Below, piece by piece: positions 13,517 to 49,562 of a DNA stretch of 64,000 nucleotides (its first letter is position 1; each line of letters begins with the position of its first letter). The notes beneath the pieces are model-generated. The model worked only from the letters and a program-made list of their open reading frames with translations. It was not told the DNA's origin and made no database searches. Location: NCBI GenBank assembly GCA_965240325.2, contig OZ251244.1:496001-560000 (forward strand). Direction: 5' to 3'. Both the position numbers and the translations under genes were made by a program. This DNA comes from Rebecca billardiae RCC1528. Its lineage: Eukaryota > Protista > Haptophyta.

Positions 13517-13870
13517 TCGGCCTTCGGCCGAATCTACGCCGGCGTGGGCCTCGCCCACGCACGTTCTCAAGGCTCAAGCTGATGTTCACAAGGCAGGCCC
13601 GCCTCGCGGCTCGGCCGCCATCATTCTGTGCTCGATTTTGGCTCCGCCATTCCGGCACCGGCGAACCGCCCTCGTCCGGGGCGCGCGACCGTGACGGTTG
13701 GCCGTTGGTCATGGTCACGCTCCTGACGAAGTACAATCGGCAGTGACGGTACTGTATGATGAACAGTACACCGCCCTTGACAGTACGCACTCTGAACTCT
13801 TAACTCCGCTGCAGCGAGCAGTGCCCTGCCCAGGCCGGTGGCGGAGACGCGACGCATCGGAGGCGGAGCG

Positions 13871-16800
13871 ATGCGACGATGCGCGGCCGTCCTCCTCGCG
13901 CTCACCGCCGCGTCGGGCGCTCGCTCGTCGCGCTGCCCCGCGCGCTGCCACGAGCGCGGCACCTGCGACGAGCACCGTGGCGTGTGCCACTGCCCGCTCT
14001 CGCACACGGGGCCGGACTGCTCGCAGCTCGCCATGCCGGCGTGCGCCTTCCACAATTACACGCTCGTGGGTAAGACGTACTTCATGTTCGAGCTGAACCG
14101 CACGCGGCCGAACTGGCTCGGCGCGGTGCCGTGCGCGTGCCTCGAGCAGGCCGCCGCGCACCACCTGCTCTGCCCGCTGCAGGCCAACCAGGGAGGGCTC
14201 GTGCGCGGCCAGTGCGCTGTGGCCGTGGTGTGCGCGCGGGCGCCACCCAGCTTGGCGCAGCTCGCCGAGAGCCCGGCGGACGCCACGTGGGTGGAGGCGC
14301 ACATGGCGTTCGATCCCTCGCGGATCCGCAACGGCGGCACGCCCTTCCACCTCGTCGTCGATCGCGAGCTCGACGGCGGCGTCGCCGCGGTCAGCGCAGC
14401 GCACGGAGTGCGTCCGCTGCCGCTGCGCGCGTGCGGCGGCGCGCGCTGCGGCCTGCGTGGCACTTGTGAGGAGCGTGAGGGCGTGCCGCGCTGCCGCTGC
14501 CTGCCGGGCTTCGCGCCCGCACCCGCGCGCGCAGGCGGCGGCGACGCGCGCGGCGAGGCGTGCGCCCTCGAGCGCCCGCGCAAGCCGCCCCCGCCCTGGT
14601 CGATCGCGCAGCGGCACGCGCCGGTGTCAGCCAGCCCGGCAGTCCGGTGGAACTCGGAGTACCCTCAGCCGTGCCCGAACGCGTGCCGCGGCCGCGGCGC
14701 GTGCGACGGGCTCGGCTTCTGCAAGTGCCCGCCGGGCTGGTGGGGCCTCGACTGCGCCATCCGCCTCGACCCCGCCACCGGCAGGCCGGCGCACGAGGGG
14801 GCGCTCCCGATCGACCGCGACCGCCCGGTCTATGCCAGCATGGCCGCCTCGCTGCGCGCCAGGCGCGCAGAAGGGGCCGCGCGCGGTGGGCGGCGGCAGC
14901 CCGTGCTGCCGGAGAGCTCGAACGACGCGCTGCTGCAGCGCGTGCTGCCGGCGCGCGGGGCCGCTGCCGCCCCACGCCGCGCCGCCGCGCCGCCCGCCTC
15001 GTCGCGCGTGCGTATCTACGTGTATCCACTGAGGCCGCACCTGCGATGGGTGAACGTGCGCGTGTATAATCAACTGCCGTGGGCGCTGCTCGAGCTGCTG
15101 CTCGCCTCGGCGCACGTGGCGCCGAGCGCGGAGGACGCGACGCACTTCTTCGTGCCGGGCGCGACGCTGCCGCACTGGGGCGGCATGGCCGCGCGCTTCC
15201 GCGCCGTGCTTGACGGCTGGGGCTGGGCGATCGATGCGGCCGTGCGCGCGCGCTCGCCCAATCAGCTCGTGCCGGTGTCGGGCGATCGCGCGTGGGCGGA
15301 GCACTGGGGGCGGGGGGTCCGGCCGAGCCTGGCCGGAGTGCCGGGCGCCTTCAACCCGTCGAACCGCTCGGCGGTGCTCGTCGCGCTGCAGTACAACGGG
15401 CGCGAGGACCTGCTGCCCGACGACCGGTGTGACGTGTGCTTTGTCCGCGGCCGCGACGTGATGCTGCCGCCGCTCCCGTCGGCTGCAGACGCGTATCTCG
15501 GCTGCGCGCCGCTGCGCGAGCGCAGCCCGTGGGCGTGCGCGCGCGCGGCCGGGCCGCCGCTCGCCGAGAGCGCGGGCGGCGCGGACGAGCGCGCGGCGAG
15601 GGCGGCGCGTGCATGCCGCCGCGCACGGCTGGTCGCTGATCGCCAGTGGGCAACGCAGCCCAAGCCGAAGGGCCCCAGGGAGAAGCAGACAGGAGGCGCG
15701 GCGGCGCGCGCGGCGGCGCGCAACGGCCGCGGCGGCGGCGGCGGCGGTGCGATGGCGGCGGCAGTGGCAGCCGGGCCTGAGCGCCACGCGCGCCGGCGCA
15801 GGCGGCTGCTCCCCCGCCCGCGGCCAAAGTCGCCGACGAGCGCGCACGCGCCTGGCGCGCCGCGCCGCGCCGCGCCGCTGCTGTCGTCGGAGTCAGAGCC
15901 CTCCTCGCTCAAGGGAGCCAAGGGGGCTACCCGCGTCCCAGCGGCAAGGGAGCCACCCACTGCCCGCGTCCCAGGAGCGGCAAGGGAGCCCTCCTCGCTC
16001 GTTTTCTTTGCCGGCGCGATCCAGGGGAGGACGGAGCTGCCGCCAGCGCCGGCGGCGGGCGGGGCCTCCGCAGGCGCGCATGGGCCGGCGCGGCCGCAGC
16101 GGCAGCCGGCAGACGCGGTGGGCGCTCAGCTCTCCCTCGCCGAGGCGTCCGAGCTGGCGAGCGAGCAGTGGACGGCCGCGGGCCGCTCGCGCGCGTACAA
16201 GCTGCGCTACCGCCTGCCGCCCTCCTTCCGGCGGAACGACCGCGCGTACGCACTCGACTGGCGGAGGCTGCTGTCCGACTTGCACGCGCGCAGGGCCGGG
16301 TGGCGCGTCGTGAACTCGGCCGAGCCCGCTGCCCCGGGCGGCGGCACGCGCGGGCGCCCCGTGGCCAAGATTGACGCGATGGCGCGCGCGGTCTTCTGCG
16401 CCGTCCCTCCGGGGAGCTCTGGCGGCTGGGGCGCGCGCTACCTCCCCGCTGCGCTGCTCGGGTGCGTCCCTGTCTTTGTCAAGCCCGCGCCGCACGCCGA
16501 CCCGTTTGACGAAATCCTCGACTGGCGCGGCGCGGCCGTGCACGCGGGCACCCTCGCTGAGCTCGCCTCGCTGCACAGAAACCTCTCAGCCCTCGCGGCG
16601 GATGCGCGGGCGCTCGCGGCGAAGCACGCCGCGCTCGAGCGCGTCTGGCCCGCCCTGATCTGGTCCACGCTGTACGAGGGCTGCCTCGCCCCAGCGCCAT
16701 CGCCGCAAGTGGCGGGGGCCGTGGCGCGGGCCTCGGCTCGCGGCCGCGCGCGTCGTCGGCTCCTCCCACGGTCTCAGGGGCGGCGGCCTGCCAGCGGCGG

Positions 16801-16957
16801 CCATCCGAAAGGCGTCGCCATCGCCCGTTCCGCCTCAGTCACGGCCACCGCTGCGGCCCACCGACCGGCCCCCGCGTTGCAGCCTGTCACCGACGCATGG
16901 GACGCGCTCATCCGCACCCTGGAGCGTCGGCTCGGGTCAGATGGCAGCCCGCGATGA
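13871..16957 (+). CDS. Exostosin-family (GT47) glycosyltransferase with EGF-like repeats, intronless
   Basis: Signal peptide MRRCAAVLLALTAA; EGF motifs (CHERGTCDEHRGVCHCPLSHTGPDC, CPNACRGRGACDGLGFCKCPPGWWGLDC); RIYVYPL, AEDATHFFVP, GRDVMLP, VFFAG, MARAVFCAVPPG..GWG.R...A.LLGCVPVF, PFDEILDW. Confidence 0.88.
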   Translation: MRRCAAVLLALTAASGARSSRCPARCHERGTCDEHRGVCHCPLSHTGPDCSQLAMPACAFHNYTLVGKTYFMFELNRTRPNWLGAVPCACLEQAAAHHLLCPLQANQGGLVRGQCAVAVVCARAPPSLAQLAESPADATWVEAHMAFDPSRIRNGGTPFHLVVDRELDGGVAAVSAAHGVRPLPLRACGGARCGLRGTCEEREGVPRCRCLPGFAPAPARAGGGDARGEACALERPRKPPPPWSIAQRHAPVSASPAVRWNSEYPQPCPNACRGRGACDGLGFCKCPPGWWGLDCAIRLDPATGRPAHEGALPIDRDRPVYASMAASLRARRAEGAARGGRRQPVLPESSNDALLQRVLPARGAAAAPRRAAAPPASSRVRIYVYPLRPHLRWVNVRVYNQLPWALLELLLASAHVAPSAEDATHFFVPGATLPHWGGMAARFRAVLDGWGWAIDAAVRARSPNQLVPVSGDRAWAEHWGRGVRPSLAGVPGAFNPSNRSAVLVALQYNGREDLLPDDRCDVCFVRGRDVMLPPLPSAADAYLGCAPLRERSPWACARAAGPPLAESAGGADERAARAARACRRARLVADRQWATQPKPKGPREKQTGGAAARAAARNGRGGGGGGAMAAAVAAGPERHARRRRRLLPRPRPKSPTSAHAPGAPRRAAPLLSSESEPSSLKGAKGATRVPAAREPPTARVPGAAREPSSLVFFAGAIQGRTELPPAPAAGGASAGAHGPARPQRQPADAVGAQLSLAEASELASEQWTAAGRSRAYKLRYRLPPSFRRNDRAYALDWRRLLSDLHARRAGWRVVNSAEPAAPGGGTRGRPVAKIDAMARAVFCAVPPGSSGGWGARYLPAALLGCVPVFVKPAPHADPFDEILDWRGAAVHAGTLAELASLHRNLSALAADARALAAKHAALERVWPALIWSTLYEGCLAPAPSPQVAGAVARASARGRARRRLLPRSQGRRPASGGHPKGVAIARSASVTATAAAHRPAPALQPVTDAWDALIRTLERRLGSDGSPR

Positions 16958-18355: not shown

Positions 18356-18423
18356 ACGTACAGTAGTGTAACGACATGGTACAGCACGCACTGTAACGGT
18401 TTGCAAACCAACCGGTGTGCCTC

Positions 18424-19464
18424 ATGGCGCTCGGCGCGGCCGCGCTCGTGGCGGCGGCCGCCGGGGCCGCGCCCCCGCCCCTCATCCCCCCGTTCGTGCT
18501 CGCCTCTGCATCTTGCTCGGGCTCCACGTGGATTGTGGCGACGCTGCGCGTGCTGCTCGAGCAGGCCGCCGGCGTGACGATGTGCGAAACGACAAGGGAG
18601 GCGGGCGCGGAGATGCTCCACCCGCACCCAGACCGAGAGTGGCGCGGCGTGCGGCTGGACAAGGCCGGCACGCTCAGGCGGATGCTCACGCTGCACCGCG
18701 AGTGCTCTGCGGCCAACGCGACCATGCTCCTGAAGGTGTCGACGAGCGTGAGCTCGCAGAGAGGCATTCCGTACATGGATGTCGCGCACGTGCTGCAGAA
18801 GATGCGCGCCCGCACAGCGCTGACGTACCGGATGAACGTGATCGACCGTTTCGTCTGCGCGGCGAGGGACTGCATGGCTACGAATGGGATCGAGCGCGTG
18901 TGGTCGAACAACGGCAGCGTGATCCCGATGCCGAGCAACGCGCACGAGTGCTTCGAGCGGCGCAAAAACGTGGCGGCACCCCACGACGGACCACACCAAC
19001 ATCAACACAGCCTCAGAGGCGCGGCCAAGGATCCGTCGCCCACGGAGAAGATCAACGTCATCCGTGCGCAGGGCTTCTTCCATAGGATCTCCCTTTGGCG
19101 CGACAGCGAGGGGCCCGAGGTCGCCCTGAAGATGGACGCTCTGGGCTACGGCCCGCGCCCCATCATGCCGGTGCCGTACGAGCAGCTCGCGCTCTCCGGG
19201 CACACGCCCGAGCTCATCGGCTGGAGCGTGGCCGCCTTCCAACATCTGCTGCGAGTGTTCCTCGGGCGCGAGGTGGATGCGGGTGCGATTGAGCGGGTGC
19301 TCGCGAAGGGCGCGGGTAAGCGGCCGAAGCCGGCGTCGCACCGCGCCGCGTTCTACAACTTCGAGTTCGTCCAGAGTGCGATGCGCGAATCGACAGAGCT
19401 GGCCCCGACCCTCAAGGCGATGCTGCGCGACGACCTACATCCTACCGGGCCGCTGGACGACTGA
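18424..19464 (+). CDS. Sulfotransferase-like P-loop protein, copy A, intronless
   Basis: Signal/anchor; FVLASASCSGSTW (5'-PSB-like), YRMNVIDRFVC (3'-PB-like), VPYEQL. Near-identical to 27333-28514. Confidence 0.6.
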   Translation: MALGAAALVAAAAGAAPPPLIPPFVLASASCSGSTWIVATLRVLLEQAAGVTMCETTREAGAEMLHPHPDREWRGVRLDKAGTLRRMLTLHRECSAANATMLLKVSTSVSSQRGIPYMDVAHVLQKMRARTALTYRMNVIDRFVCAARDCMATNGIERVWSNNGSVIPMPSNAHECFERRKNVAAPHDGPHQHQHSLRGAAKDPSPTEKINVIRAQGFFHRISLWRDSEGPEVALKMDALGYGPRPIMPVPYEQLALSGHTPELIGWSVAAFQHLLRVFLGREVDAGAIERVLAKGAGKRPKPASHRAAFYNFEFVQSAMRESTELAPTLKAMLRDDLHPTGPLDD

Positions 19465-19553
19465 CGGGGCGTGACGATGACGACAATGCGGCGGACACTA
19501 CGCGCGTGTGCCACCCGCATTACTATCGCCCTGGCCAGTCTGCAGTCGGCTAC

Positions 19554-22038
19554 CGGCAGCGCTAAATCAGCCCGGGCCGATTTAAGCTTATCTCAGCCCG
19601 GGCCGATTTAAGCGCTTAAATCGGCCCGGGCTGAGATAAGCTCCGCGCGAGCTTATCTCAGCCCGGGCTGAGATAAGCGCTTATCTCAGCCCAGCGGCTC
19701 GCGACTCGGCCGCCGTGGACTCGGAGCGCACGTCGCGCGGTGCGGCCCGCCCGCTCCATGGCTGCACGCGCTGCTGTGTCTTCGGTGGCCACACCGACAG
19801 GGTGAAGTGTGCTGAGTCTAGTGGCGGGCGCCCAGCTCCACCCACCCCCTTCTCCCTGGCCCGCCCCGCCTGCCCTCGCCCGCATCGGATGCCTTCCTCG
19901 CGCATGCAACTCCACGGCGGCAACTCGGCTTGTGGACTTGCTGCCCGCATGAGAAGCATGCAGCCAACACCATGGACGCACCATCGACGTTCGCCAGTTG
20001 ACCATGTCCGCGCGTAGTCGCACGCGGGTGAACACGGCCCGTGCGCTACAGTCGGTTGTGTGCTGTTGCCATTGCACGTTGTTCAAAATGTGCTGAACGT
20101 TGCCACCGCGGCCGCCGCGCGCGGGCGTACCGGTGCCAGCGGCACAGGCATGGGCACCGGCGCAGCTCCATGGACGATCATGGCGCTGCGGCTAGTGGGC
20201 GCGCCGACGCCGGCACGCCCGCAGCTGTCGGCGCGCACGGCGAGCACGCCAAGCTCGCAGCGCGTGCCGCGGCTCAGGGGCTGGTGCGCACGGACAGCAA
20301 GCTAAGGTTGCGGTGTGCGCCGCAGTCCGCACGCACGCAGCGGCCGCCGCATGCGCCACGCGCGCGGTGGCCGCCGCGCGCGCCGCGGTTGCCGCGCGCG
20401 CCGTGGCTGCCGCGCGCGCCGCGGCGGACCAGCGCGCCGCGGCCGTGCGCGACGACCGAAGGCTAGTCTGTGGCGGATAGCGAGCGAGCGCGCCGCCGCG
20501 GCCAGTGAGCGCGCAGCGGCCGGCGAGCACGCTCAGCCTCATCGCGCAACTGTCACGTGTTGGCGCCAGGCTTGATGGGCACCTGCGGCGTTGGGCCAAT
20601 GGGCATCTGTGGCCCGTGCGGTGCGCGCTCGCCGGTTGCGGTGGCGCGCTCGCCAATACCTACGCATGCTGGCGCGGCCTGCTCACCGGTCGCGGTGGCG
20701 CAAGCCCCGGCTGCACCATCCATCCGCGCCGGTTGCGGCGCGCTCACTAGCCGCAGCGGCAAGCTCGCTATCCGCCACAGACTCGCCTTCGGTCGCCGTG
20801 CGCGGGGCGGTCGCGGCGCGTTGGTCGGCCTCGGCGCGCTCGCCGGCCGCGGCGCGCGCGGCAGCCGCGGCGCGCGCAGCAGCCACGGCGCGCTCGCCGG
20901 CCGGGCGCGACGGCCGAGTTACGCTGTCTGCCGCCGTGGCGCGCTTACCGGCCGCAGCGCGCGTGGCAGCCGCGGCGCAATTGCCAGCCGCGCGGCGCGC
21001 GGCAGCCGCGGCGCGCTCACCGGCCGGGCGCGCGCAGCAGCCGCGGCGCACTCGCCGGCCGCGGCGCGCTCGCCGGCCGGGCGCGCTCAGCAGCCGCGGC
21101 GCGCTCGCCGGCCGCGGCGCGCTCGCCGGCTGCGGCGCGCAAGACGGCTGCGGCGCGCGCGGCGGCCGTTGTGTGCACGCGGACCACGGTGCGCGCGGCG
21201 ACCTTGGCGTGCTCGCCAAGCGCGCCGAAAGCTGCGAGCGCGACGGCGCCGGTGAGCCCACCAGCTGCGGCGCCACGACCGTCGACAGTGTATTACTCTG
21301 CCGAAGCGCCTGCCACACTTGAGACGCAGCGAGCCGCACACCACAGCTGTCAGCCGATGGTCCAAGCTCGGTCGTGAACCGGCAGCCGCCGCGCAGAGTA
21401 GTGCGCCGCGCGAAGGGACCGTTTCGATCTGACGGGATCGCGATGATTGGCTGATCCAGCGTCGAGCGTGACCGGCAAGTATGCCAAGCTGGGCAAGCAC
21501 ATGCCGCAACGCGCGAACGGTACAAGGGCAACGTGGTACAAGGGCAACGGCACACGGCAGACAGGTGCACGTGGGCCGTGGCCACATGCGTGCGATTACA
21601 CATGACACACATGTACAGCACACGACGTACAAGTACACGCGACCGTCGATGGTGGAATCGATGGTGGAACAATGGCGTTGGCTGAGGCCGTTGCATGCGC
21701 GAGGAAGGCATCCGATGCAGGCGAGGGCAGGCGGGGCGGGCCAGGGAGAAGGGGGTGGGTGGAGCTGGGCCCGCCACTAGACTCAGCACACTTCACCCTG
21801 TGGCCACCGAAGACACAGCAGCGCGTGCAGCCATGGAGCGGGCGGGCCGCACCGCGCGACGTGCGCTCCGAGTCCACGGCGGCCGAGTCGCGAGCCGCTG
21901 GGCTGAGATAAGCGCTTATCTCAGCCCGGGCTGAGATAAGCTCGCGCGGAGCTTATCTCAGCCCGGGCCGATTTAAGCGCTTAAATCGGCCCGGGCTGAG
22001 ATAAGCTTAAATCGGCCCGGGCTGATTTAGCGCTGCCG
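19554..22038. mobile_element. Non-autonomous foldback/Mutator-like element, 2,485 bp, with long TIRs (19554-19910 and 21690-22038)
   Basis: ~350-bp arms are reverse complements apart from a 6-bp and a 2-bp indel and few substitutions. 9-bp direct repeat GTCGGCTAC at 19545-19553 and 22039-22047. No transposase motif seen inside. Confidence 0.9.
20810..21165. repeat. Degenerate ~18-bp GC-rich minisatellite inside the foldback element
   Basis: Recurrent (G)GCCGCGGCGCGCTCGCC units. A related array lies at ~20360-20445. Confidence 0.7.
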
Positions 22039-22125
22039 GTCGGCTACACCGTAGTCACTAGCAGTAGCAGTCTAGTCCGACAGCAGACATCAGTCAACAC
22101 CGCGAGTAGTTATACGTCGCGAGCT

Positions 22126-22128
<3 letters not shown>

Positions 22129-22212
<84 letters not shown>
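22129..22212. repeat. (TA)n microsatellite
   Basis: Direct TA run of ~84 bp. Confidence 0.97.
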
Positions 22213-22218
<6 letters not shown>

Positions 22219-22336
22219 TTATATATAATAATAATAACGACGCGCGACGACTTCGTCTCACGTGCGTATAATTCGGACGGATCGATGACGACGATATATT
22301 CTAGTCTGATCAGACTAGTTCTCTCTCTCTCTCAAT

Positions 22337-41800: not shown

Positions 41801-42056
41801 TGATCAGGACGAACTTGTACTGCACCGACGCGACGTACGTGCCGATCAGCACCGTGTCCGAGTGCCACGTCGGGAACGTCTCGGCCGACGTCTGCAGCCG
41901 CAGCGCCTGCGTCGGGTCCCACCCGCCGAATTCGGGCAGCTCGCCGCACACGGCGAGGGTCTCGCCGAAGCGCGTGTCGGGCGCGTGCACGCGGAACGAG
42001 ACGCGCGTGAACAGAGGGCCCAGCAGGTAGTCCGTCTCCTCCTTTGGCTCCGCCAT
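36991..42056 (-). CDS. TPS: CBM20 - trehalose-6-phosphate synthase (GT20) - trehalose phosphatase (HAD) fusion with degenerate catalytic motifs. Exons 42056-41136, 40729-40479, 39996-39679, 39425-39389, 39291-38895, 38766-38138, 37813-37673, 37344-36991
   Basis: CBM20 (FRVHAPDTRFGETLAVCGELPEFGGWDP..QYKFV..RWEETPSNR). GT20 (YSKTTLWPLLH, LVWVHGHHLLLVP, GLFVHTPFPS, IGFHLYEYARNF, RDGLNLLPFEF, LSEFAGC, VNPF). TPP (LDGTL, ILSGR, LAAELG, DADPDFG, VNKG, GDDHSDEFMF, VGHKPSRA). Confidence 0.9.
37585..37667. repeat. 14-bp minisatellite (TGCCCGCGCCGCGC)n in a TPS intron
   Basis: About 6 direct copies. Confidence 0.85.
40048..40065. repeat. Intronic telomere-like repeat (TTAGGG)3
   Basis: Reads (CCCTAA)3 in TPS transcript sense, ~50 nt before the 3' splice site at 39997. 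Confidence 0.85.
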
Positions 42057-42311
42057 CCTCGCTCCCTCCCTCGCGGCCGAGTGTGGAAGGCGGTGGCCTC
42101 TGATGGCCTGGTTTCGTCCCCGCACGGGCCGCACGGTCCGGCCGGAGCCGGTTCATTCTAGACCTGCCACCTGTAATCCTCTATGATGCGGGTAATCGAT
42201 ACCCTCCGGACTTATTAGATACGGTACCGTATTTTTAGCGCGCTGCGCGGGTGGAATCAGTTGACCCGGCTCATAGGAGACCGAGCGAACCGCTGAGGAG
42301 AGCGGCAAAGC

Positions 42312-43299
42312 ATGCTGGACCGGCGCGCAGCCGTGCTCGCCATCGCGTTCGCCGCGCTCTCGGGCGGCGTACCGGTGCCATACCCGCCCGCGCAGGGCTG
42401 TGATGACACGCTCAACGCGTGGTGCGAAGCCGACGGCTGCCCCGCCGTCGGGCAGACCCTGTACGCTCGGCGCGACACCACGGCAGAAGGGGACCCGCCC
42501 GCATGGCGCTGCTACGCGAACGGCACGCTCTCGAACGACACGCTGACGTACGTGAATGGGACGGATTACTGCACGCGAGATGCGGAACTGCAGGCCGAGC
42601 TGGCGACATGCCTCGCTGCGCCAGAGACCCCGCCGTCGCCGCCGCCCGCACCTCCGCCCAGTCCGCCACCATCGCCGCCGCCCTCACCGCGCTCGCCGCC
42701 CCCGACCCCACCGCCGACCCCGCCGCCGTCACCGCCGCCGACTCCTCCGCCGTCACTGCCGCCGAGCCAGCCACCAAGCCCGCCACCGAGCCCGCCGCCG
42801 AGCCGGCCGCCGAGCCCACCGCCGAGCCCGCCGCCGCTGCCGCCGCCGAGCCCGCCGCCGTCACCACCGCCGAGCCAGCCACCGAGCCCGCCGCCGAGCC
42901 CGCCGCCGAGCCCGCCGCCGAGCCCACCGCCGAGCCCACCGCCGAGCCCACCGCCGCTGCCGCCGCCACCGAGCCCGCCGCCGTCACCGCCGCCGAGCCA
43001 GCCCCCGAGCCCGCCGCCGAGCCCGCCGCCGAGCCCGCCGCCGAGCCCACCGCCGAGCCCGCCGCCGCTGCCGCCGCCGCCGAGCCCTCCGCCGTCACCG
43101 CCGCCGAGCCAGCCACCAAGCCCGCCGCCGAGCCCGCCGCCGAGCCCACCGCCGGACCCACCGCCGAGCCCGCCGCCGCTGCCGCCGCCGCCGAGCCCGC
43201 CGCCGTCACCACCGCCGAGCCAGCCACCGAGCCCACCACCGAGCCCGCCGCCGAGCCGGCCGCCGAGCCCACCGCCCAGCCCGCCGCCACCACCGCCGC

Positions 43300-43334
<35 letters not shown>

Positions 43335-46300
43335 CCGCCGCCGCCGACCCCTCCGCCGTCCCCGCCGCCGAGCCAGCCACCAAGCCCGCCGCCCAGCCCG
43401 CCGCCAGCACCGCCACCGAGCCCGCCGCCAAGCCCACCACCGCCCAGCCCGCCGCCGCCAAGTCCGCCGCCTCCGGTGCCACCCCCACCGAGCCCGCCTC
43501 CGCCCAGCCCCCCGCCGCCCAGCCCCCCGCCGCCAAGCCCGCCGCCTCCGGTGCCGCCGCCGCCCAGCCCGCCTCCGCCCAGCCCACCGCCGCCCAGCCC
43601 GCCGCCTCCGGTGCCGCCGCCGCCCAGCCCGCCTCCGCCCAGCCCACCGCCACCGAGTCCGCCGCCTCCGGTGCCACCGCCACCGAGCCCGCCTCCGCCC
43701 AGCCCGCCGCCGCCCAGCCCGCCGCCTCCGGTGCCACCGCCGCCGAGCCCGCCTCCGCCCAGCCCGCCGCCGCCCAGCCCGCCGCCTCCGGTGCCGCCGC
43801 CGCCCAGCCCGCCTCCGCCCAGCCCGCCGCCGCCCAGCCCGCCGCCTCCGGTGCCGCCGCCGCCCAGCCCGCCTCCGCCCAGCCCACCGCCGCCGAGTCC
43901 GCCGCCTCCGGTGCCACCGCCACCGAGCCCGCCTCCGCCCAGCCCGCCGCCGCCCAGCCCGCCGCCTCCGGTGCCACCGCCACCGAGCCCGCCTCCGCCC
44001 AGCCCGCCGCCGCCCAGCCCGCCGCCTCCGGTGCCGCCGCCGCCCAGCCCGCCGCCGCCCAGCCCGCCGCCTCCGGTGCCGCCGCCGCCCAGCCCGCCTC
44101 CGCCCAGCCCACCGCCGCCGAGTCCGCCGCCTCCGGTGCCACCGCCACCGAGCCCGCCTCCGCCCAGCCCGCCGCCGCCCAGCCCGCCGCCTCCGGTGCC
44201 GCCGCCACCAAGCCCGCCTCCGCCCAGCCCACCGCCGCCGAGTCCGCCGCCTCCGGTGCCACCCCCACCGAGCCCGCCTCCGCCCAGCCCCCCGCCGCCA
44301 AGCCCGCCGCCTCCGGTGCCGCCGCCGCCCAGCCCGCCTCCGCCCAGCCCACCGCCGCCGAGTCCGCCGCCTCCGGTGCCACCGCCTCCGGTGCCGCCTC
44401 CGCCCAGCCCGCCTCCGCCCAGCCCACCGCCGCCGAGCCCGCCGCCGCCGAGCCCACCGCCGCCGAGCCCGCCGCCGCCGAGCCCACCTCCGCCCAGCCC
44501 TCCGCCGCCGTCAACGCCACCGCTGCCTCCCCCGCCCAGCCCGCCTCCGCCCAGCCCTCCGCCACCGAGCCCGCCGCCGCCCAGCCCACCGCCGCCCAGC
44601 CCACCGCCGCCGTCGAAGCCACCGCTGCCTCCGCCGCCCAGCCCGCCGCCGCCGAGCCCTCCGCCGCCGAGCCCTCCGCCCCCGAGCCCGCCGCCACCCA
44701 GCCCGCCGCCACCCAGCCCGCCGCCGCCGTCGAAGCCACCGCTGCCTCCGCCGCCCAGCCCGCCGCCGCCCAGCCCGCCGCCGCCGAGCCCGCCACCGCC
44801 CAGCCCACCGCCGCCCAGCCCGCCACCGCCGCCACCGCCTATGCCGCCGCCGAGCCCGCCGCCCAGCCCTCCACCGCCCAGCCCGCCGCCGCCGAGCCCT
44901 CCACCACCCAGCCCGCCTCCGCCCAGCCCACCGCCGCCCAGCCCACCGCCGCCGTCGAAGCCACCGCTGCCTCCGCCGCCCAGCCCGCCGCCGCCCAGCC
45001 CTCCGCCGCCGAGCCCTCCGCCCCCGAGCCCGCCGCCACCCAGCCCGCCGCCACCCAGCCCGCCGCCGCCGTCGAAGCCACCGCTGCCTCCGCCGCCCAG
45101 CCCGCCGCCGCCCAGCCCGCCGCCGCCGAGCCCGCCACCGCCCAGCCCACCGCCGCCCAGCCCGCCACCGCCGCCACCGCCTATGCCGCCGCCGAGCCCG
45201 CCGCCCAGCCCTCCACCGCCCAGCCCGCCGCCGCCGAGCCCGCCGCCGCCGAGCCCGCCGCCGCCAAGCCCACCGCCGCCCACCACACCGCCGCCGCCCA
45301 GCCCGCCGCCGCCGAGCCCGCCGCCGCCCAGTCCACCTCCGCCCAGCCCGCCGCCGCCCAGTTCGCCGCCGCCAAGTCCGCCGCCGCCGCCACCGCCTAT
45401 GCCGCCGCCGAGCCCGCCGCCCAGCCCTCCACCGCCCAGCCCGCCGCCGCCGAGCCCGCCGCCGCCAAGCCCACCGCCGCCCAGCACACCGCCGCCGCCC
45501 AGCCCTCCACCGCCCAGCCCGCCGCCGCCCAGTCCACCGCCGCCCAGCCCGCCGCCGCCGAGCCCGCCGCCGCCAAGCCCACCGCCGCCCAGCACACCGC
45601 CGCCGCCACCGCCTATGCCGCCGCCGAGCCCGCCGCCCAGCCCTCCACCGCCCAGCCCGCCGCCGCCCAGCCCGCCGCCGCCGAGCCCGCCGCCGCCCAG
45701 CACGCCGCCGCCGCCGAGCCCTCCGCCGCCGAGCCCTCCGCCCCCGAGCCCGCCGCCACCCAGCCTGCCGCCACCCAGCCCGCCGCCGCCGTCGAAGCCA
45801 CCGCTGCCTCCACCGCCCAGCCCGCCGCCGCCCAGCCCGCCGCCGCCGAGCCCGCCACCGCCCAGCCCACCGCCGCCCAGCCCGCCACCGCCGCCACCGC
45901 CTATGCCGCCGCCGAGCCCGCCGCCCAGCCCTCCACCGCCCAGCCCGCCGCCGCCCAGTCCACCTCCGCCCAGCCCGCCGCCGCCAAGTTCGCCGCCGCC
46001 AAGTTCGCCGCCGCCGCCACCGCCTATGCCGCCGCCCAGCCCGCCGCCCAGCCCTCCACCGCCCAGCCCGCCGCCGCCGAGCCCTCCGCCGCCGAGCCCG
46101 CCGCCGCCCAATCCACCTCCGCCCAGCCCGCCGCCTCCCAGTTCGCCGCCACCGAGGCCACCGCCGCCGCCACCGCCAACGCCACCGCCGAGCCCGCCGC
46201 CCGGCCCTCCGCCGCCAAGCCCGCCGCCGCCGAGCCCGCCGCCCCCAAGCCCGCCGCCGCCAAGCTCGCCTCCGCCGCCACCGCTGTCGCCGCCACCCAG

Positions 46301-47620
46301 CCCGCCTCCGAGCCCACCGCCGCCAAGCCCTCCGCCACCTAGCCCGCCACCCCCGAGCCCGCCTCCGCCCAGCCCACCGCCGCCGACTCCGCCGCCTCCA
46401 CCGCCGCCGTCACCGCCGCCAAGCCCGCCGCCACCGAGTGCGCCGCCGCCACCACCGCCGAGCCCGCCGCCGAGCCCACCGCCGAGCTCACCGCCGCCAA
46501 GCCCGCCACCACCAAGCCCGCCGCCGCCGAGCCCGCCACCGCCGACTCCGCCACCACCACCGCCACCGTCACCACCGCCCAGCCCGCCGCCGAGCCCGCC
46601 GCCACCAAGCCCGCCCCCGCCTCCGCCGCCCACGCCGCCGCCGAGCCCACCGCCGAGCCCGCCGCCACCAAGCCCTCCGCCGCCGAGCCCTCCGCCGCCG
46701 AGCCCGCCGCCGCCGAGCTCACCGCCGTCACCGCCGCCGCCACCGCCGCCGAGCCCGCCGCCGAGTCCGCCGCCGCCAAGTCCGCCGCCGCCGCCACCGC
46801 CGAGCCCGCCGCCGAGCCCGCCGCCGCCGAGCCCGCCGCCCCCGCCTCCGCCGAGCCCGCCGCCAAGCCCGCCGCCGCCGAGCCCGCCGCCACCGCCTCC
46901 GCCGAGCCCGCCGCCGAGCCCGCCACCGAGTCCGCCGCCACCGCCGCCGCCGGTGCCGCCGCCCAGCCCGCCGCCGCCGAGCCCTCCGCCGCCGCCGCCG
47001 CCCAGCCCGCCGCCCAGCCCGCCGCCGCCGAGCCCACCGCCCCCGCCACCGCCGTTCCCGCCGCCGAGCCCGCCGCCGCCGAGCCCTCCGCCACCGCCGC
47101 CGCCGAGCCCGCCGCCGAGCCCGCCACCGCCAAGCCCGCCGCCCCCGCCGCCGCCGTTGCCGCCGCCCAGCCCGCCGCCGCCGAGCCCTCCGCCGCCGCC
47201 GCCGCCGAGCCCGCCGCCCAGCCCGCCGCCGCCGAGCCCGCCGCCCCCGCCGCCGCCGTTCCCGCCGCCGAGCCCGCCGCCGAGCCCGCCGCCGCCGCCG
47301 CCGCCGTTGCCGCCGCCATCCCCACCGCCGCCGAGCCCGCCGCCGCCGCCACCGCCAAGCCCGCCACCGAGCCCGCCACCGAGCTCGCCGCCGCCCCCGC
47401 CGCCGTCGCCACCGCCATCCCCGCCACCGCCGAGCCCGCCACCGCCGCCGCCGCCGAGCCCGCCGCCGAGCCCGCCGCCACCGAGCTCGCCGCCGCCGCC
47501 GCCGCCGTTGCCGCCGCCATCCCCACCGCCGCCGAGCCCGCCGCCGCCGCCGCCGCCCAGCCCGCCGCCCAACCCACCACCGAGCCCGCCACCGCCGCCG
47601 CCGCCGTTGCCGCCGCCATC

Positions 47621-47651
<31 letters not shown>

Positions 47652-49562
47652 CCGCCAAGCCCGCCGCCGAGCCCGCCGCCGCCGAGCTCGCCGCCGCCGC
47701 CACCACCGAGCCCGCCGCCGAGCCCGCCACCGCCACCGCCGCCGAGCCCGCCACCCATCCCGCCGCCGAGCCCGCCGCCGCGACCACCGCCCCCGTCGTC
47801 GCCGCCACCGCCACCACCAAGCCCGCCGCCATCACCACCGCCGCTGCCGCCCCCGAGCCCGCCCCCGAGCCCGCCGCCGCCGCCGCCCTCGCCGCCGCCC
47901 TCGCCGCCGCCGCCTGCGCCGCCACCCGCCCCGCCGCCGAGCCCACCGCCGAGCCCGCCGGTGCGCTACTGGTACTCGGACTGCCTCGACGACACGACGG
48001 TGTGCACCGAGCTCGTGGCTTCGGCAAGCGGGCTCACTGGCCCGATCCCCACGGAGGTGGGGCTGATGACGCGGCTGACCCGATTCGAGCTGCACGACAA
48101 CTCGCTGAGCGGCACGATGCCCACCGAGTTTGGCAGGCTGACCAGCCTCGAGCGCAGCACGCTCTACCGAAACTCGCTCGACGGCCAGATCCCGACCGAG
48201 CTGGGCGAGCAGGCAAGTCTCGTCGAGTTGCAGCTGTTTGGCAACTCGCTGAGCGGCGCGCTGCCCACGGAGATGGGCATGCTGGCGGTGTTCACCAAGC
48301 TCGTGCTCGAGGACAACTCGATCTCTGGCAGCTTGCCCACCGAGATGGGCCAGATGGGTCGGTTTGAGCAAATGTGCGTGCAGCGCGCGAGGGCGCACGC
48401 TCCCGACGGCACCCCACGCGCGCCGCGTGCTGCCGCTCACGCGCGCGCGGCGGTACGCGCGCGCGCACGCCTGGCCCGCAGGCTGCTGCGCGCGAACTCG
48501 CTCGTCGGCAGTATCCCGACGGAGGTGGGCGGCCTGAGCAGCCTGGCGCTGATGCAGCTGAACGACAACTCGCTCGACGGGAGCATCCCCACGCAGGTGG
48601 GCGGCATGACGAGCCTCACGGTGATGGCGCTGTACCGCAACTCGCTCGTCGGCGCGCTCCCGACGGAGGTGGGCGAGATGACGAGCCTGATCGAGCTGGA
48701 GGGCTTCCGGAACTCGCTGAGCGGCCCCGTGCCCACGGAGGTCGGCGCTCTGACAAGCCTCACCGACCTGCTCTTTGACCGCAACTCGTTTGACAGCCTG
48801 CCGACTGAGCTCGGCTTGCTCTCGAGCCTGTGGCTGATGGGCTTGGACCTGAACTCGCTGGCGAGCAGCATCCCGACCGAGCTTGGCGGCATGAGCACGC
48901 TCGCGCTCATGTACCTGTACGACAACTCGCTCGTCGGCACGATCCCGACCGAGGTTGGCGAGCTGACGAGCCTCTCGTGGCTGCGGCTGTACCGCAACTC
49001 TCTGTCGGGCACGATTCCGACGGAGGTGGGCGCGCTCACGATCGGCACTGCGCTGAGTCTGTTCGGCAACTCGCTCGACGGCCGTGTGCCCACGGAGCTC
49101 GGCGCGATGGCGAGCCTCGCCTCCATCTCGCTGGACGACAACCCGCTCGTGGACGTCATCCCGACCGAGATTGGCGCGATGACGAGTCTCTCGGCGATGA
49201 GCGTCGCCGGCACGTCAATGTGTGGCGGCGAGCACGGCTACTCGGTGGTGACGCCCGCGGTGCTGCCGGCGTGCCCGCCGGCGCCTCCGCCGCCGCCGCT
49301 GCCCTCGCCACCGCCGAGCCCGCCGCCGCCCAACGACTTGCCGCCGAGCCCGCCGAGCTCGCCGCCGCCGCCGCCGCCGAGCCCGCCGCCCTCGCCGCCG
49401 CCAAGCCCGCCGCCGCCGAGTGCGCCGCCGCCGCCGCCGCCGAGCCCGCCGCCGAGCCCGCCGCCCTCGCCGCCGCCGAGCCCGCCGCCCTCGCCGCCGC
49501 CGGCGCCGCCGCCGGCGCCACCGCCCTCGCCGCCGCCCTCGCCGCCGCCGAGCCCGCCGCCG

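Follow-up and report, generated by a model that had tools for sequence, protein, structure and literature searches.

An apparently young foldback family of Mutator type in the haptophyte Rebecca billardiae and its candidate transposase gene

The haptophyte Rebecca billardiae RCC1528 has a GC-rich genome (about 72% G+C), for which there is an assembly of 72 Mb in 41 contigs. We analysed a 64,000-nucleotide stretch of this assembly (contig OZ251244.1, positions 496,001 to 560,000; C27:496001-560000 in our contig numbering), which is called the window here. It contains a mobile element of foldback shape, 2,485 bp long (window 19554-22038), with long terminal inverted repeats (TIRs) and a flanking target site duplication (TSD). 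The first-pass annotation of the window had placed this element at 19545-22047. The element is indeed present, but these are the outer edges of the TSD, and the repeat itself runs from 19554 to 22038. Its parts are the following.

19545-19553, no strand: left copy of the TSD, GTCGGCTAC, 9 bp; the same 9-mer stands at 22039-22047
19554-19910, plus strand: left TIR, 357 bp; 97.5% identical to 21690-22038 inverted, and 94-100% in other copies
19554-19692, plus strand: left module array, a CGGCAG tip followed by nine 14-bp half-sites, from the half-site parse
19585-19642, no strand: perfect 58-bp palindrome made of modules 2 and 3; 100% self-inverted match over 58 bp
19642-19650, plus strand: 9-bp spacer TCCGCGCGA separating two inverted B half-sites, from the subfamily comparison
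19911-20172, plus strand: left unique segment, without an inverted partner within the element
20173-20532, plus strand: left arm of the inner inverted repeat, which pairs with 20727-21283 at 70-81%
20354-20445: five 18-bp GC-rich repeats within the left inner arm, from tandem-repeat detection
20533-20726, plus strand: central foldback loop, with no inverted match
20727-21283, plus strand: right arm of the inner inverted repeat, which pairs with 20173-20532 at 70-81%
20808-21168: about 20 copies of the 18-bp repeat within the right inner arm, from tandem-repeat detection
21284-21689, plus strand: right unique segment, the first 237 bp of which are common to the right end of a transposase-bearing element
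21690-22038, minus strand: right TIR, 349 bp, from inverted alignment to the left TIR
21900-22038, minus strand: right module array, with the same half-site order as on the left, from the half-site parse
22039-22047, no strand: right copy of the TSD, 9 bp, equal to the left GTCGGCTAC

The identity between the two TIRs extends over 357 aligned columns, in agreement with the foldback with TIRs of about 350 bp that had been annotated. Inward of the module array, each TIR continues as non-repetitive DNA for about 210 bp. The interior of the element forms a second, weaker foldback through its inner arms. Inverted matches cover 63% of the element, and the remaining 37% lies in none (19911-20172, 20533-20726, the short stretch 20894-20948 and 21284-21689). 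The element encodes no recognisable protein: no Pfam family was matched by the open reading frames (ORFs) of its interior, and an Rfam scan of the element region returned no family.

The element belongs to a family that is dispersed over the genome. The exact 23-nt terminus occurs 25 times in forward and 25 times in reverse orientation (50 identical ends), while a control pattern gave 0 matches. When all candidates were scored, the left unique segment was found at 23 genomic places at 95-100% identity; a genome search with the central loop returned the same 23 family copies, and the 1.8-kb interior is 96-100% identical in every one of them. Thirteen copies are full (2,426-2,498 bp); they are 98.4-100% mutually identical and fall into three close subgroups. 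A perfect 9-bp TSD, different each time, flanks 12 of the 13 on ten contigs (11 of 12 if the window copy is excluded), so that the 9-bp duplication read at the window copy holds for the family and the independent insertions sought after the first annotation are at hand. The terminus, beginning with CGGCAG, is fixed in all copies. The central G-S-C of the TSD (S = G or C; positions 4-6) is present in 12 of 12 cases, and the longer core CGSCG (positions 3-7) in 9 of 12, against 3.1% of the 9-mers in the window (P = 5e-12). Two copies are inserted in (GGC)n tracts. Four pairs of termini are long: C11:2348636..2359755, C14:2084564..2090122, C24:1321190..1326909 and C13:890091..894176. To judge from the sequences of its copies, the family is young and recently active.

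One copy that has no TSD (L031, C19:1152058-1154536) is chimeric. The 1,500 bp on its left match, as the reverse complement and at 100% identity, the right flank of the copy at C7:780459, and the 1,500 bp on its right match at 100% the right flank of the copy at C19:1140855, its neighbour 11.2 kb away. This structure arose either very recently, by ectopic recombination or duplication involving two copies, or through a mis-join of the assembly at the repeat.

The module array occupies the outer 139 bp of each TIR and consists of the 6-nt CGGCAG and, inward of it, nine 14-bp half-sites whose orientation strictly alternates. There are two types of half-site, A (GCTTAAATCGGCCC) and B (GCTTATCTCAGCCC), and the outermost one is a degenerate A (A'). 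Their order from the tip is A' <A B> <A A> <B (9-bp spacer) B> <B B>. The array thus amounts to four CCCGGG-centred palindromes and one unpaired half-site, close to the five or so CCCGGG modules with mixed half-sites of two types that had been seen before. Within a pair the half-sites always join as CCC/GGG, and the constant unit is a palindrome of 28 bp. The junctions between module pairs vary, being a 2-bp overlap, no gap or a 9-bp spacer, and give spacings of 26, 28 and 37 bp. The predicted folding energy of the single-stranded array is -57.5 kcal/mol, which corresponds to z = -9.2 relative to 200 shuffled sequences. Comparison of the window family with a related subfamily on C24 showed that 145 of 147 aligned columns of the array are identical (98.6%) versus 179 of 214 in the inner TIR (83.6%), and both differences in the array are accounted for by a reverse-complement flip of the 9-bp spacer.

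A single half-site order is common to the 12 intact copies. Five others (L040, L041, L048, L050 and L052) carry deletions or truncations at half-site boundaries: clean deletions between half-sites are found in L050 and L052, and the arrays of L040, L041, L048 and L050 are truncated or broken by other DNA at positions 33-35, 58-63 and 97, again at such boundaries. These changes look like decay rather than regular length variation. AT-richer foreign sequences adjoin the cut-off arrays exactly at half-site boundaries in L050 (470-533) and L041 (2913-3000), and they are probably other transposons inserted into the arrays.

A candidate for the transposase was identified with the Pfam model PF10551 of Mutator-like elements (MULEs), which gave two matches in the genome (C10:1918801-1919085 and C23:328244); by this model, two MULE genes are a lower bound. 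The match on C10 lies between a forward family terminus at C10:1914372 and a reverse one at C10:1922759-1922781. The exon concerned is single-copy in the genome and matches the model at E = 7.6e-10, above the curated cut-off, and its neighbours in the ESM Atlas are RNaseH-like clusters of MULE and ZSWIM1-3 proteins. It forms part of a predicted multi-exon gene that extends from C10:1917071 to about 1920000 in four pieces and three frames, as is expected of introns. Piece 1 starts with the ATG at C10:1917071 and stays open through 5 unread bases into frame 2 of the sequence L055, to about nt 1276; within L055, piece 2 holds the MULE domain and occupies nt 1390-1881 of frame 1, piece 3 about nt 2040-2290 of frame 2, and piece 4 about nt 2403-2700 of frame 3. 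Environmental relatives span successive pieces, 1 and 2 in P0009 and P0013, and 2, 3 and 4 in P0006, with the order unchanged. The motifs YDDTFNTN, LITDGD, CxxLCVWH and STRGESINS are present in the exon translations and align with those of the relatives; the catalytic D, D and E and the C/H residues were assigned from established MULE motifs, not from structure. The first exon holds a GC...F-x-HNH motif that is conserved in the relatives, and one relative gives a FAR1 match there below threshold, so that a zinc finger of WRKY/FAR1 type is likely in the N-terminus of the C10 protein.

The relatives of the C10 protein number 254 at E <= 0.001 among 1.84 billion representative proteins. One of them (P0001) is 100% identical, and the best non-self relatives are 54-65% identical. 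Every member of the relative clusters that was checked comes from a short contig (JGI/IMG, ENA or Logan) and is nameless or called a hypothetical protein. The metagenome collection was also scanned for the 23-nt terminus and for the palindrome of two B half-sites, with 0 matches for each. The second MULE-domain gene, at C23:326744-330034 (ORF 262-3162 of L054, minus strand), is one long frame of 966-1,051 aa that matches PF10551 at E = 1.2e-12. Its protein is about 30% identical to the C10 exon, no family termini were found near it, and it may represent another Mutator lineage or a domesticated gene.

The C10 gene is tied to the family on both sides. Upstream of its ATG there are 274 bp and then a short partial array of B half-sites identical to those of the family. 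This partial array ends in the inner boundary of the family's array (CCCAGCG...GCTCGCGAC) with a 12-bp insertion, and the sequence beyond it is completely different from that of the family. In the 5' coding part of the gene, 18-bp repeats read as hexapeptide repeats and are about 70% like those of the element; the element's subterminal 18-bp repeats appear to double as the hexapeptide repeats of the transposase N-terminus. Downstream of the gene, features of the window copy follow in the same order and orientation. The final 54 bp of the central loop have a counterpart at C10:1921727-1921781 (87%; likewise at C24:1322158, 89%). C10:1921747-1922437 matches window 20826-21520 at 81%; within it, the 237 bp at C10:1922201-1922437 have 85% identity to window 21284-21520 and 86% to the C24 subfamily. 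Next, at C10:1922437-1922536, comes sequence like the inner end of the right TIR (81%), and the exact 23-nt terminus stands in the right orientation at C10:1922759-1922781, about 345 bp from the junction of the 237-bp segment with the TIR. The next 172 bp of the window copy (21521-21692) are absent at C10 and in the 90% C24 subfamily; for this reason, the window and C24 families look like rearranged derivatives of the ends of the C10 element.

On this evidence we consider the element a non-autonomous transposon of the Mutator (MULE) superfamily that has foldback architecture and was recently active, with the C10 gene as its likely mobiliser, and put the probability of this reading at roughly 0.8. 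The affinity to Mutator, already suspected from the long repeat-bearing TIRs and the TSD, is now assigned because a MULE-domain gene shares the terminus, the half-site array and the right subterminal region with the family. TSDs of MULEs are 8-11 bp long and typically 9 bp (PMC6446971). The family combines TSDs of 9 bp and long TIRs with a cognate MULE-domain transposase that carries the catalytic motifs, although the element bearing this transposase has no left tip and its right end was located by search. The proposed mechanism is modelled on experiments with Muta1 of Aedes aegypti, a MULE described as a 'type 2 foldback', in which subterminal repeats increase transposase binding, cleavage and excision (PMC5499845). 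The C10 transposase would act in trans, its FAR1/WRKY-like zinc-finger region at the N-terminus binding the 14-bp half-sites. Inverted pairs of half-sites in fixed geometry around CCCGGG would suit dimers, and the four palindromes and the tip of each end would load several transposase molecules and aid the pairing of ends. The DDE domain would then cut at the CGGCAG tips, and insertion would proceed through 9-bp staggered cuts.

Several observations weigh against this reading. The C10 gene does not lie within a clean autonomous element, and only in part was the copy encoding a MULE transposase that had been sought thus obtained: a gene with family ends was found, but its left tip is missing. 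On the left, its shortened array and a truncated non-autonomous copy (C10:1914372-1916756, 98.5%) are fused head to head, and this copy is without the outer 96 bp of its facing TIR. The resulting 8.4-kb composite (C10:1914372-1922781) was tested for the TSD CCCGGCGCC, and no matching 9-bp duplication was found. The 274 bp between array and ATG are unique in the genome and are therefore not part of a long TIR, and the right end (C10:1920586-1922781) was placed by search matches alone. In the protein, Pfam found no DNA-binding domain in the N-terminal exon, the exons having been searched one by one and not as a joined spliced model; a FAR1 match was obtained in the N-terminal region of one relative only, below threshold (E = 3.3e-4). 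In addition, the census of transposase genes by PF10551 is a lower bound, so that the C10 gene need not be the sole candidate.

These weaknesses bear above all on the alternative that the family is of MULE type but was moved by another transposase, from another lineage or a source since lost, and that the C10 gene is an immobilised relic. The lack of an own left tip in the C10 element and of a TSD around the composite would suit such a history, as would the second MULE ORF at C23:328244. However, the C23 protein is only distantly similar to the C10 exon (about 30%), no other MULE match is enclosed by a pair from the 50 termini, the catalytic motifs of the C10 gene are intact, and this gene shares five features with the family, namely tip, half-sites, 18-bp repeats, 237-bp segment and inner TIR. 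We consider another mobiliser improbable. Still less can be said for the suggestion in the first-pass annotation that the interior is captured host DNA and the element a Pack-MULE, that is, Mutator ends around a fragment of a host gene. The interior between the MULE ends is long and non-coding, and GC-rich 18-bp repeat arrays like those of the element exist at other loci (68-72%). Nevertheless, the three unique interior segments match the copies of the family only, apart from one relic at 73% over 130 bp (C24:731861), no Pfam family is present in any interior ORF, and a genome search with the unique segments found no host parent locus. Because the transposase-bearing element has the repeat block and the 237-bp segment as well, the interior is best read as rearranged element sequence, and an origin by capture is very unlikely. 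There is next to no chance that the element is a foldback of the P superfamily like Galileo, or an artefact of assembly. A 7-mer, TCGGCTA, can be read as the duplication in the window copy, and this reading had been allowed for; it fails since the position of the terminus is fixed across the 50 ends and 12 full copies, spread over ten contigs, have TSDs of 9 bp. The gene that shares the ends is a MULE, and 23 copies with independent flanks exclude an artefact. Membership of the P/Galileo group was rejected likewise, as the duplication is 9 bp throughout and not 7-8 bp.

The 18-bp repeat arrays elsewhere lie in both orientations at C1:2612567-2616207, C34:438874-439661, C17:1193589-1195718, C35:432963-434375 and C26:258175-259251. 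In the relic at C24:731861-732554 (about 700 bp), sequence 73% like the left unique segment and sequence 72% like the adjacent repeat region are arranged as in the element, and the stretch probably represents an old and diverged relative of the family.

What the modules do is a separate question. They fit protein-binding sites, since the array is conserved, B half-sites are shared with the C10 gene, and the geometry of the palindromes is fixed while the spacing between modules varies; judging from this design, such sites are probably for dimers. The earlier proposal of transposase-dimer sites or cruciforms is plausible and gains indirect support from the conservation, the spacer flip and the deletions at module boundaries. 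In its specific form, that the 28-bp palindromes are the dimer-binding units, with about four transposase dimers per end, and may also extrude as hairpins in vivo, we advance it only tentatively. The modules might instead act mainly as DNA structures, hairpins or cruciforms that mark or destabilise the ends, rather than as sequence-specific binding sites. The strong hairpin potential of the array would agree with this, and so would the 9-bp spacer flipped between subfamilies and the five copies cut exactly at half-site boundaries, which is the expected product of hairpin-mediated or inverted-repeat recombination. But structure alone would tolerate compensated change, and the half-site sequences are nearly invariant between subfamilies; B half-sites also stand in the array beside the transposase gene, and instability of the array is a cost, not evidence of function. 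A mainly structural role is therefore doubtful, though not negligible, and the structural and protein-binding readings are compatible. On the evidence of the flip and the deletions, the inverted half-sites do recombine or form hairpins in the cell, but a need of such structures for transposition does not follow from these traces.

The surroundings of the element in the window are as follows. An open frame at 18415-19464 (plus strand) ends with a TGA at 19462-19464, 90 bp before the element, and the insertion may thus lie just beyond the 3' end of a gene. Further upstream, a long ORF at 13838-16957 (plus strand) encodes EGF-like repeats and an exostosin GT47 domain. The element is followed after about 90 bp by a (TA)50 microsatellite (22129-22227), and the region there is locally AT-richer (56-60% G+C at 22-26 kb). 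The 6 kb at 42001-48000 have 80-86% G+C and differ very strongly between the strands, with a GC skew of -0.30 to -0.44 and an AT skew of +0.22 to +0.45.

Among known systems, Muta1 is also a MULE with a TSD of 8-9 bp, a terminal motif followed by about nine subterminal repeats of 12-14 bp, and non-autonomous derivatives, but its repeats are direct tandem ones with linkers of 3-4 bp in a TIR of 145 bp (PMC5499845). In the element described here, half-sites of two types alternate and form 28-bp palindromes centred on CCCGGG, and about 210 bp of the TIR are non-repetitive. As in type 2 foldbacks, there are multiple short motifs able to fold; their arrangement is inverted, not tandem. Muta1 belongs to an insect, whereas the present host is a GC-rich protist. 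Tm1 of Meloidogyne, a Mutator/Foldback element, resembles the family in its 9-bp TSD and in composite TIRs that are mostly a repeat of about 14 bp, variable in number in Tm1; most of its members are non-coding and few have a MULE-type transposase, and its repetitive TIRs are discussed as recombination hot spots (PMC3169594). It differs by tandem repeats and by asymmetric 7-bp terminal motifs outside the inverted repeat (PMC3169594). In the present family, by contrast, the tips are symmetric, the modules are palindromic and their order is almost fixed. If our reading of the modules is correct, they represent a design of Mutator ends that is undescribed for MuDR, Muta1 and Tm1, whose repeats are direct, and one that couples end recognition to a built-in instability of the ends.

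The FB elements of Drosophila have long inverted arms with short repeats and a 9-bp TSD, are mostly non-coding and are prone to rearrangement. Their arms are long variable tandem arrays, whereas here only the outer 139 bp are repetitive and 37% of the element is outside inverted matches. Galileo, a foldback of the P superfamily, has long TIRs with internal repeats, a 7-bp TSD and a P-type transposase. The element shares with it the long repeat-bearing TIRs and the foldback shape, but has a 9-bp TSD and a MULE as partner. As in MuDR/Mu and the plant MULEs with tandem TIRs, one transposase source would serve many non-autonomous elements that share only TIRs, and plant composite MULEs with extra TIRs resemble the head-to-head fusion at C10 (PMC3310237). 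Plant Mu elements, with TIRs of about 200 bp, have no arrays of palindromic half-sites there, and their target preference is different. MuTAnT of Medicago is likewise a MULE with a marked target preference that lands in simple repeats (PMC4486113); it targets TA microsatellites, in contrast to the GC-rich palindromic core CGSCG of this family.

A literature search found no description of MULEs in haptophytes among the papers available to it. With its superfamily assigned and a single-copy candidate transposase gene linked to it, the family offers a pair of cis and trans components on which the working of repeated end motifs could be studied in Mutator elements of hosts other than plants and insects. 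Because of its half-site design, CGSCG core and near-identical copies, it is a good candidate when active elements of a GC-rich alga are sought, and it is a possible insertional tool. Everything described here falls within the known Mutator/foldback kind represented by Muta1, Tm1 and FB, and the element is in kind an ordinary non-autonomous MULE; what is particular to it is the alternation of half-sites of two types, the CGSCG core, the repeats shared between subterminal DNA and the transposase N-terminus, and the lineage of its host.

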